NCBI GenBank assembly: GCA_964035545.1
Contig: OZ037770.1
Span: 9,554,973-9,618,972, forward strand
DNA length: 64,000 nt
Direction of reading: 5' to 3'
DNA from: Bugula neritina
Lineage: Eukaryota; Animalia; Bryozoa
The notes under the pieces are model-generated. The model was not told the origin of the DNA, made no database searches, and saw only the letters and a list, made by a program, of their open reading frames with translations. The translations under genes were made by a program, and so were the position numbers. This document shows, one piece after another, positions 8,711 to 52,605 of the stretch (position 1 is the stretch's first letter; the number at the start of each line of letters is the position of its first letter).

Positions 8711-10901
8711 TCATTGTTTTTTATGTTTTTTAACTTTAATTTTCTTTTTCACCTTGACCTTAGTTCGCCCACCTTTTTTATCATTAGTCCTTCTTATAAC
8801 ATTTTTATTTGGTTTATAGTTCATTTTGGTTGTTGTAACGTTTTTGTCAGACATTTGAGCTACCGCTTCAGCAGTTGGATTAATCTTGTTTTCAGAAGGT
8901 CTTTTTTCTGCTTCGCTATACTGTTTTTGCTTAGTTTTGAGTTTTCTCATAAACCGGTTTAAGGCTCCAGAAACGTTTACTAAATCTACTGTGTTCTTGC
9001 TTAGAGGTTTCACTCTCTTATAATTGTTTCTTGATGCCTTTTGACCGAGTAGTTTTACAGCTGCAGCCATTTTATTAGCAGATGAAGCAGCTTTTGTCTT
9101 AGTATCACCTGCATGATGTGCAACTCTTTTGCTCTGACCAAACTTGTTCATTTTTGATCCTGTTTTATTTAGTGAAGACAAATTTTCTGTATTTACTTCA
9201 CTGGCTTCCTGGAAATTATTTTCTTGGTTGCTGTTTATGCTATTTTCATCATTTTCTTCTTCCTTTTTATTTGACATGCTATCTGTGTTTGTTTGTAAAT
9301 CACCCATTTGCTTGCTGCTGGTTTTACTCCTTATATCTGAATTACTCTTTATATCTGATTTACTCTTTAGATCTGATTTACTCTTTAGATCTGCTGATAT
9401 GCTTTTCTTTTTACGAAACCGTATATAGCCAAGAGTTGAAATCCCGACCTACAATTTCCGCATGAGAGCATTTTACTAAACAGCGACATAAAACTTTGAA
9501 GAACCTAAAGTCCTCACCAGCATCATCACATGCTACTAAAGCTAAAAAGTGTTTCTTTTTACAACTATGTATATATATTATATAGTGCATTTTGATTTAG
9601 CAAATAAAATTTATTAAAAGTTTAGAGCCTGAGAAATATTGTTTAGTTTATTTAGCTTCCACAGTTTATTAATAATGAAACAGCCATGTTCTAGAGGTTA
9701 GAACGTTTGCCTAGTAAACAGGAGGTCATGGGTTCAAACTCAGACAAAGGTCATTGGTGTATTAAGAAGAGCATCCAGTCATATTTGCTCCTGTGATTCA
9801 TTTAAATAAGTGTTTAGCCCACTTTGACATTAACCCTTTCCATCAGGGGTTTCTCACAGGAACATCGACTATGAACCGCTTGATTTTTTTTAATTTAATA
9901 ATAGCTTTCTTTGTTTCTTTGCATGCAAAATAAATATACGTGCCAACTGTCAGCAACAGTTTTATAATATAATAGCTTAAAGATTTCCTTATTGATGTAT
10001 GTTTTTTTATCTACACTTAAAATAATTTAAAAGGAAAGACACTGGTCAGGTTGTTTTAGCAAAAAATAAGAAAATCGGTTTCAAATTTGAAAGTTTACAA
10101 GTTTATACAGTAATCCTTAATAATATGAAATATAATATAAAACAAGAGTGTTGCAGTTGAATGCATCTTTGGAATTACAATCCGCTAGCTACTTTTTTAT
10201 CATATATACAACAAGCACTTAATGGTAAAAAACCTACCAACATAAACAAAGCAATTAATGTGCCAATGATTGTTGGGATGAGTCCACTTATAAGCTTAGT
10301 CTGTGTAGATGTAATGAGTTTTACGTTGCCAGTAACTTCTTTGTCTAGTGTTTTTATGGTAGTACTGTGGTCATTTGAGACAGTAGTTGTTGGTAATGGA
10401 TTGGTAGTTACTTCTGTTTATGAAATATAAAAACCAATTATGCTCTGCTTATTCATATTTATTCAGGTTAATTCAAAAGAAATATGGACTATTTTTTTAA
10501 CTACATAGTAAAGGTTACTTTTAAACATGAAATTTGACACACTTTGCCTAAGTTTTAGGAAGCAAAAATTTCCCCACTTTAACCTTAAATTTATGAGTCA
10601 TCAACATAAAAATAAATTGTCCATCACGGGAACGACTTGAGATTTAAAAATTCAATTTCTTTTAAACCACTATATATTGGATGACAACCAAACAACTACA
10701 TACAATATAAACTTAATATTCAGTCTATTATATTTGGGTACATGTAGACTACAGAACTTGAGCATCATAAAATACCTGTCAATTTTAAGAGTATTTGAAG
10801 ACATGTTGCCAAAAGATCAGATTCACTGGAATTTAGCAGCAGAATAAAACTGTACACAGCAGATTCATTTATCAGGTATTTTAGATCCACACTGTTGTTA
10901 T
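8711..10901 (-). CDS. Receptor terminal exons: G 10901-10776 (putative second half of FN3), H 10413-10238 (Thr-rich stalk and TM start), I 9448-8711 (TM end and Lys-rich cytoplasmic tail)
   Basis: Phases are 1/1, 1/0 and 0/stop. Acceptor aattgtag|GTCGGG extends ORF 8711-9307 upstream to give [15 protein letters not shown], homologous to IGISTMGYIQFGRSK in the paralog. Confidence 0.85.

Positions 10902-52605: not shown

Follow-up and report, generated by a model that had tools for sequence, protein, structure and literature searches.

The receptor gene in the window

The 64,000-nucleotide stretch of Bugula neritina chromosome 6 analyzed here (the window), which occupies positions 9,554,973-9,618,972 of that chromosome, carries a minus-strand gene that extends from position 52605 to position 8711. 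Rebuilt from minus-strand open frames and repeat similarity, it consists of 37 exons, from the ATG at 52605 to the TGA at 8711; all introns are of the GT..AG type, 37 of 37 exons are phase-compatible, and the joined frame contains 151 cysteines and no internal stops. The gene is known from genomic DNA alone, with exons joined locally only for analysis of phase, stops, cysteine content and hydropathy; the one sequencing run that matches the locus is a DNA run covering 39560-44350, with no RNA run among the matches. An earlier note on this DNA had described 36 phase-compatible exons; the phase compatibility stands, and the exon count is revised to 37. The predicted product comprises about 2,421 amino acids (aa), given an F1a exon that starts at 44298, most likely the true start. 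A longer version of this exon (start at 44331) was dropped: 44298 is the better acceptor and is used by paralogue B, and in paralogues C and E the extra 11 codons contain a stop.

The predicted protein consists of a signal peptide, the L1 domain, an ErbB-type domain II with two inserts, four L/Cys-rich/X modules, a stalk, a transmembrane (TM) segment and a tail, and contains five L domains:

52530..52605, minus: exon 1, ATG and signal-peptide-like stretch (exon model, hydropathy; identical exon in paralogues C and E)
49346..52287, minus: L1 domain, three exons (52048-52287, 50602-50739, 49346-49471) (exon model; weak match of L1a to ErbB2/EGFR domain I)
52103..52150, minus: hypervariable L1 loop, ~16 codons (most divergent window, alone or tied, in two independent gene pairs)
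44921..46570, minus: first part of ErbB-type domain II, exons 46389-46570 (CR1a) and 44921-45038 (CR1b) (Furin-like and ErbB matches)
43728..44298, minus: inserted domain F1, exons 44119-44298 and 43728-43976 (exon model; second half homologous to that of F2)
42445..43539, minus: inserted domain F2, exons 43333-43539 and 42445-42720 (FTP-like pattern, without the fucose motif)
33932..41944, minus: module 1, exons A, C, D, E, H and X (Cys-rich end, L domain, domain-IV-like Cys-rich region, X)
20367..33770, minus: module 2 (exon model, repeat similarity)
15699..20202, minus: module 3 (exon model, repeat similarity)
11400..14777, minus: module 4, terminal type (Recep_L_domain E 3.9e-4, GF_recep_IV E 0.007)
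10776..10901, minus: exon G (with exon X4, FN3-like strand pattern; no Pfam match)
10238..10413, minus: Thr-rich stalk and most of the TM helix (exon model, hydropathy)
8711..9448, minus: TM end, 236-aa basic tail and stop, no kinase

The ectodomain contains 47 N-glycosylation sequons, and the model has one strong hydrophobic segment (KD 2.33, model residue 2172) besides the N-terminal signal-like stretch. As the earlier note had stated, the frame is open despite the load of transposable elements in the introns, where the LTR, Penelope-like and Tc1-like elements were located. The elements and repeats in the window are:

23451..28714, plus: LTR retrotransposon-like insertion, recent, with 352-bp terminal repeats 99.4% identical, in a module 2 intron
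36853..38818, minus: Penelope-like element with RT and GIY-YIG, in a module 1 intron
47358..49141, no strand assigned: Tc1/mariner-like element with terminal inverted repeats, in the L1c-CR1a intron
30256-32879: insertion flanked by identical direct repeats of 87 bp and containing a plus-strand frame of 470 codons
61845-62084: 27-bp tandem repeat, 8.9 copies

All domain and fold searches were run exon by exon, with reduced sensitivity for L1, F1, F2 and X+G. The profile of exon CR1a matches residues 164-224 of ErbB4, ErbB3 and EGFR, that is, the first half of domain II (best E 1.8e-12); the matches take in Drosophila EGFR and LET-23, the best 60 are all ErbB-family proteins, and the exon itself matches Furin-like in Pfam (E 3e-5). 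The L1a profile shows weak but consistent similarity to domain I of ErbB2/EGFR (E 0.055). The CR1a match (E 2e-12) and the succession of L and Cys-rich regions, with L1a as the weaker element, uphold the derivation of the ectodomain from EGFR put forward in the earlier note. The second domain II exon, CR1b, produced no PDB match in the profile search. Between the cysteines that match those of the EGFR arm, CR1b has a loop of 11-15 aa, a placement made with no PDB alignment for this exon; the dimerization-arm loop of human EGFR, about 26 aa long, would thus have a short equivalent in the window gene, as placed by Cys spacing.

In all four modules, the six exons A, C, D, E, H and X have near-identical lengths and phases, with exactly 30 cysteines per module. 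Exons C1 and C4 match Recep_L_domain (E 4e-4), C2 and C3 share about 80% identity with C4, and these matches, along with that of L1a to ErbB domain I, bear out the claim of five L domains. The A exons match Furin-like, and the H exons weakly match GF_recep_IV (E 0.007, module 4). The exon A profile scores best against the insulin-receptor-related receptor and the insulin receptor (IRR/IR; E 9e-6), so that domain ancestry is not uniform at the exon level; despite exon A, the predicted order of L, Cys-rich, L, Cys-rich is EGFR-like. The repeat unit would accordingly correspond to the end of domain II, domain III, domain IV and exon X. Exons D, X, G and the tail have no Pfam match, including none to fn3; the C, E and X profiles have no sequence match in PDB, and exon X has none in the ESM Atlas. 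By strand pattern alone, X and G (F and G of the earlier note) look like halves of one FN3-like domain; the internal modules carry X without G, that is, only the first half.

By EGFR Cys spacing, both inserts presumably lie in the disulphide loop that follows the arm, between the last cysteine of CR1b and the first cysteine of exon A, an insertion of about 300 aa within domain II. F1 and F2 have homologous second halves (hhalign E 3.6e-5), and by eye both inserts resemble FTP domains. The half-domain exons of F1 and F2 match neither PF22633 nor PF00754 nor any other Pfam family, the F2a and F2b profiles have no sequence match in PDB, and F2b has none in the ESM Atlas. A partial F2 relative was folded with AlphaFold, yielding a mostly beta model (pLDDT 48) without a fold match; this test is uninformative because a known L-domain exon used as a control also failed it. 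Pairwise profile comparison of insert sequences with a neighboring FTP pseudogene gave only hints of similarity (E 0.006-0.06). The fucose motif HX24RXDX4(R/K) and the cation motif h2DGx, as defined for F-type lectins (PMC5712786), are absent from the F1 and F2 of every cluster gene checked. The F-type fold has joined termini and is suited to insertion in a loop (PMC5712786), and FTP-like (PF22633) exon matches number at least 150 genome-wide, in large clusters on chromosomes 3, 5, 6 and 8. The inserts may be degenerate F-type folds. The lectin-like (FTL) assignment of the earlier note is not confirmed: Pfam, PDB and fold matches and the fucose motif are all missing, the hints are at the level of motifs, and the label 'lectin', being unproven, should not yet be applied to F1 and F2.

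The neighboring FTP gene is broken (window 56490-57433, plus strand), with an in-frame stop in one exon, a frameshift in the next and a weak match to PF22633; it is arranged head-to-head with the receptor gene, 4 kb upstream.

The F2b profile, compared with 1.84 billion representative proteins, retrieved only Bugula fragments, a search in which distant bryozoan members could fall below detection; Watersipora proteins are present in a collection related to that set. The other homolog searches with exons of the family also yielded matches restricted to Bugula fragments, and a metagenome scan for relatives found nothing useful. A database relative of one exon is KAF6016741.1, a protein from the B. 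neritina draft genome.

The tail of the window gene (236 aa, pI 10.3, 25% K+R, 3 Tyr) contains no ITAM/ITIM-like motif. It ends in a stop and has no Pfam kinase match, and a kinase motif scan of the 234-kb chromosome 6 cluster found none, although the same scan, as a positive control, found one on chromosome 2; the receptor is thus kinase-less, as the earlier note had proposed. Splicing into a nearby kinase was considered and rejected: there is no kinase in the cluster, and the stop is followed by AATAAA words and, beyond these, by a convergent paralogue fragment. Elsewhere in the genome, kinase exons adjoin L-domain exons at four loci (C1 13.27, C1 20.39, C4 24.25 and C5 10.00 Mb), and therefore ordinary EGFR/InR-type receptors exist separately; these kinase-bearing receptors are known here as match coordinates, and the number of kinases listed genome-wide is a minimum.

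The gene family and the turnover of its modules

Five genes located at 9.39-9.61 Mb of chromosome 6, the window gene among them, share the same head and contain 1, 6, 3, 1 and 4 modules, which gives them between 2 and 7 L domains. All five are open exon chains with conserved splice sites, a count in which the TM exon boundaries of gene A and the signal exon of gene B are not placed. Two broken fragments lie among the cluster genes. About ten further relatives map to chromosome 2. These include a tail-to-tail pair at 31.75-31.79 Mb whose members share the head of the chromosome 6 genes, have a single module, lack X and G, and end in Tyr-rich tails; at 30.57-30.68 Mb there are eight further CR1a matches with weak insert matches (match coordinates only). 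The tails differ sharply between the subfamilies. The local gene family anticipated in the earlier note is therefore real, and it is larger and more dynamic than claimed, with 1 to 6 modules per gene, crossover and exchange. Synteny near the Watersipora PAIP1 gene provided no clue to the family.

Several smaller units accompany these genes. At 708..7110 (plus strand) the window contains a 3' copy of gene B (H, X, G, TM and tail exons) that is convergent to the window gene and lies downstream of gene E on the same strand; its splice sites are intact and its H exon has one additional base in a run of A, so that it may represent a dead remnant, reflect an error in the homopolymer, or once have served gene E as an alternative end. 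Downstream of gene A (chromosome 6 9393400-9396000, minus strand) there are extra exons for a Ser/Thr-rich stalk, a TM segment and a basic tail, either a small mucin-like gene or an alternative 3' cassette. The stalk of gene B holds a basic site that could permit shedding. On chromosome 2, a third stalk-TM-Tyr-tail unit lies between the genes of the pair (31769496-31770792, plus strand), and tyrosine kinase exons, outside the kinase-less genes, are found upstream of the pair (31732481-31735571, plus strand), with copies at 31.67 and 31.71 Mb.

As far as exon E, gene E shares 97-100% identity with module 1 of the window gene, and beyond this exon it shares 95-100% with module 4. The identity switches within exon E, so that the one-module and four-module forms are connected by an unequal crossover there. 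This exon is also the most homogenized of the module exons (mean dS 0.13, vs 0.33-0.58 for the others). Between the window gene and gene B, the internal modules show dS of 0.14-0.25, whereas the L1 and F1-F2 exons show dS of about 1.1, which implies that modules move between genes. These comparisons establish gain and loss of modules by unequal crossover in exon E, along with exchange of internal modules between genes. Turnover of this kind can also arise neutrally wherever modules stand in tandem, which counts against a role in recognition.

Selection on the family and the L1 loop

Orthologues were taken from other Bugula samples, namely, the draft genome and JGI and SRA metagenomes. The orthologous exons differ by dS of about 0.2, with omega of 0.24 for gene B and 0.34 for the chromosome 2 gene; the control genes have dS of 0.16-0.26, with omega of 0.29 for PAIP1 and 0.05-0.21 for DHHC. 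As these values demonstrate, the family is constrained, evolves under purifying selection and is not unusually fast, and given that the family-wide omega is not above that of the neighboring PAIP1 (0.29), there is no general positive selection. The PAIP1-like exon used as a divergence control (PAM2, MIF4G; window 62520-63536, minus strand) is 90% identical in another Bugula sample.

Ancient allelic divergence was considered as the source of the 80-85% identity to the other Bugula samples and was rejected: the control genes are equally diverged (dS 0.16-0.26), and hence the samples are diverged genome-wide. The compared samples probably represent cryptic species. Even at control genes, about 18% of the DNA differs between the UK assembly and the draft genome, which is labelled type S, and one or the other probably belongs to a different cryptic species.

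Against this background of constraint, divergence is concentrated in one loop of L1. Over the 16-18 codons of this loop, which was first picked by eye, pN is 0.38 vs 0.07 in the rest of the exon for the chromosome 2 pair (p 2e-6) and 0.30 vs 0.06 for the window gene and gene C (p 4e-4), and the difference between pN and pS within the loop is not significant (p 0.08). Ranked by divergence among 16-codon windows, the loop comes first in the chromosome 2 comparison and joint first in the comparison of the window gene with gene C. It starts near the position of Tyr45 of EGFR, a ligand contact.

Relationship to known receptors and possible functions

With EGFR/ErbB receptors, the window gene shares the signal peptide, L1, the ErbB-type furin-like domain II, an L domain followed by a domain-IV-like Cys-rich region, and a single TM segment; it differs in the lack of a kinase, the two inserts in domain II, the apparently short arm loop, the basic tail and the extra X/G domain. 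EGFR/ErbB receptors have two L domains (I and III), in contrast to five here and 2 to 7 across the paralogues, where the III-IV-like unit is repeated 1-6 times. A metazoan survey of EGFR reported bryozoan expansions, a variable number of Cys-rich regions and dead kinases, and considered only kinase-bearing sequences (PMC4914847). The family also shares with the insulin receptor family and its decoys the L domains, the best score of exon A (to IRR/IR), a possible FN3-like membrane-proximal domain and a precedent for kinase loss. However, domain II begins as in EGFR, the Cys-rich region that follows every L domain is of the EGFR type, and the insulin receptor plan of L1-CR-L2 followed by three FN3 domains and a kinase does not apply: a Cys-rich region follows each L, fn3 has no Pfam match and there is no kinase. 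Unlike the insulin receptor decoys (secreted ones in insects, DAF-2B in C. elegans), the Bugula proteins are predicted to be membrane-anchored and contain up to seven L domains.

The IRLDs of nematodes are small L-domain proteins that are not known to have EGFR domain II/IV arrays, inserts or a variable module number. Like the Bugula family, they are expanded, kinase-less and show natural variation (PMC9262388). By these descriptions, the two families appear to have originated independently. F-type lectin mosaic proteins resemble the window gene in their tandem inserted domains and FTP-like residue pattern but differ from it in that the Bugula inserts lack the fucose and calcium motifs and have no significant profile or fold match. 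The likeness to Hydractinia Alr and other clustered invertebrate recognition receptors is one of working only, namely, clustered type I paralogues, sequence exchange, a variable distal domain and diverse tails; Alr differs in its fold, which is Ig. The open-literature searches found no description of the window-gene architecture, in keeping with the earlier note, which knew of no such family. Kinase-less L-domain proteins (IRLDs, insulin-receptor decoys) are known already, and what seems to be new is this recombination-driven architecture.

We propose, with a probability of about one half, that the family consists of type I membrane glycoproteins derived from an EGFR ectodomain that function as cell-surface recognition or adhesion receptors of variable reach. 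This is the best fit because a conserved head with one variable loop is combined with an interchangeable, length-changing stalk and kinase-less, subfamily-specific tails. The membrane-distal head (L1, domain II, the two inserted beta-domains and the first L domain) would be the recognition unit, with the L1 loop changing its specificity; the repeated L/Cys-rich/X modules would form a rigid, heavily N-glycosylated, interchangeable stalk that sets the reach and perhaps adds weak multivalent sites. The basic tail might anchor the protein to acidic lipids, the cytoskeleton or an adaptor, and the Tyr-rich tails of the chromosome 2 members could recruit cytoplasmic kinases. The likely job would be recognition or adhesion of foreign or neighboring cells (microbes, symbionts, other colonies, substrate), with allorecognition, which the earlier note suggested alongside immunity, as a possible role. 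With repeats that represent domains III-IV instead of an I-III ligand clamp, and with an arm loop that seems short, canonical EGF-induced dimer signaling is unlikely.

Other functions are compatible with parts of the evidence. The proteins could be decoys or co-receptors of the EGFR pathway, either capturing EGF-like or insulin-like peptides with their L domains or pairing with a kinase-bearing EGFR and tuning it: the L and Cys-rich domains are retained, kinase-bearing L-domain receptors exist in the genome, EGFR expansions are reported in bryozoans (PMC4914847), and such a function has been proposed for nematode IRLDs and for insect decoys of the insulin receptor (decoy precedents in PMC9262388 and PMC7253209). 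We consider this function unlikely given the insertion of about 300 aa in domain II, the apparently short arm loop and the repetition of III-IV units rather than clamps; furthermore, fifteen or more paralogues with a hypervariable loop exceed the needs of a small, conserved set of ligands. Alternatively, the 47 sequons, Thr-rich stalk, variable module number and homogenized internal modules, together with the basic site in the gene B stalk that could allow shedding, would suit a structural role as a coat or spacer, in which the protein forms a long, glycosylated rod in the glycocalyx, the cuticle or the surface used for larval attachment and in which length matters rather than specific binding. 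Such a coat is quite improbable, however, considering the complex head present in every gene, the localized hypervariability of L1 and the Tyr-rich tails of the chromosome 2 members.

At the more specific end, the family might be the histocompatibility locus of Bugula, mediating colony fusion or rejection and kin recognition through allele-specific binding in trans like that of Hydractinia Alr. The clustering of the paralogues, their gene conversion, the variable distal domain, the diversity of tails and the colonial host would all fit, and the literature searches yielded no bryozoan allorecognition gene beyond weak similarities to Alr1 (PMC7576161); nevertheless, we regard this identification as highly doubtful, the divergence between samples being genome-wide (controls at dS 0.16-0.26), with no sign of deep allelic lineages in what are cross-sample comparisons only. 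There is, finally, a very small chance that a mis-joined model, an expansion in the assembly or a silent pseudogene array has been mistaken for a gene family. The two broken fragments in the cluster, the near-identity of the paralogues and a model built from genomic DNA alone point in that direction, but all 37 exons are phase-compatible, four more genes have open exon chains, the modules differ in their introns and transposable element insertions, purifying selection is detected in independent samples, and a DNA run covers 39560-44350.

The interpretation of the family as recognition or adhesion receptors can be taken further, to a bryozoan self/non-self system built on the EGFR ectodomain, with fifteen or more kinase-less receptors, a diversifying L1 loop and a reach that unequal crossover resets, a system that might be the bryozoan locus for allorecognition or symbiont recognition; in this full form we hold it to be distinctly unlikely. 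The ectodomain of an EGFR-family receptor is usually viewed as a kinase-linked ligand clamp with an invariable pair of L domains. In this family, the EGFR scaffold is kinase-free, contains up to seven L domains and inserts, and is subject to a recombination regime typical of recognition-receptor clusters. This class of genes has been missed by kinase-anchored EGFR surveys and fragmentary draft annotations, and it provides concrete candidate genes, and one loop, for the recognition by bryozoans of neighbors, microbes and the bryostatin-producing symbiont.

The kinase matches in the assembly include intron-poor ones on small contigs (C15, C33, C66, C176 and many others) that contain many in-frame TAA and TAG codons and almost no TGA, which suggests that ciliate DNA is present in the unplaced scaffolds.
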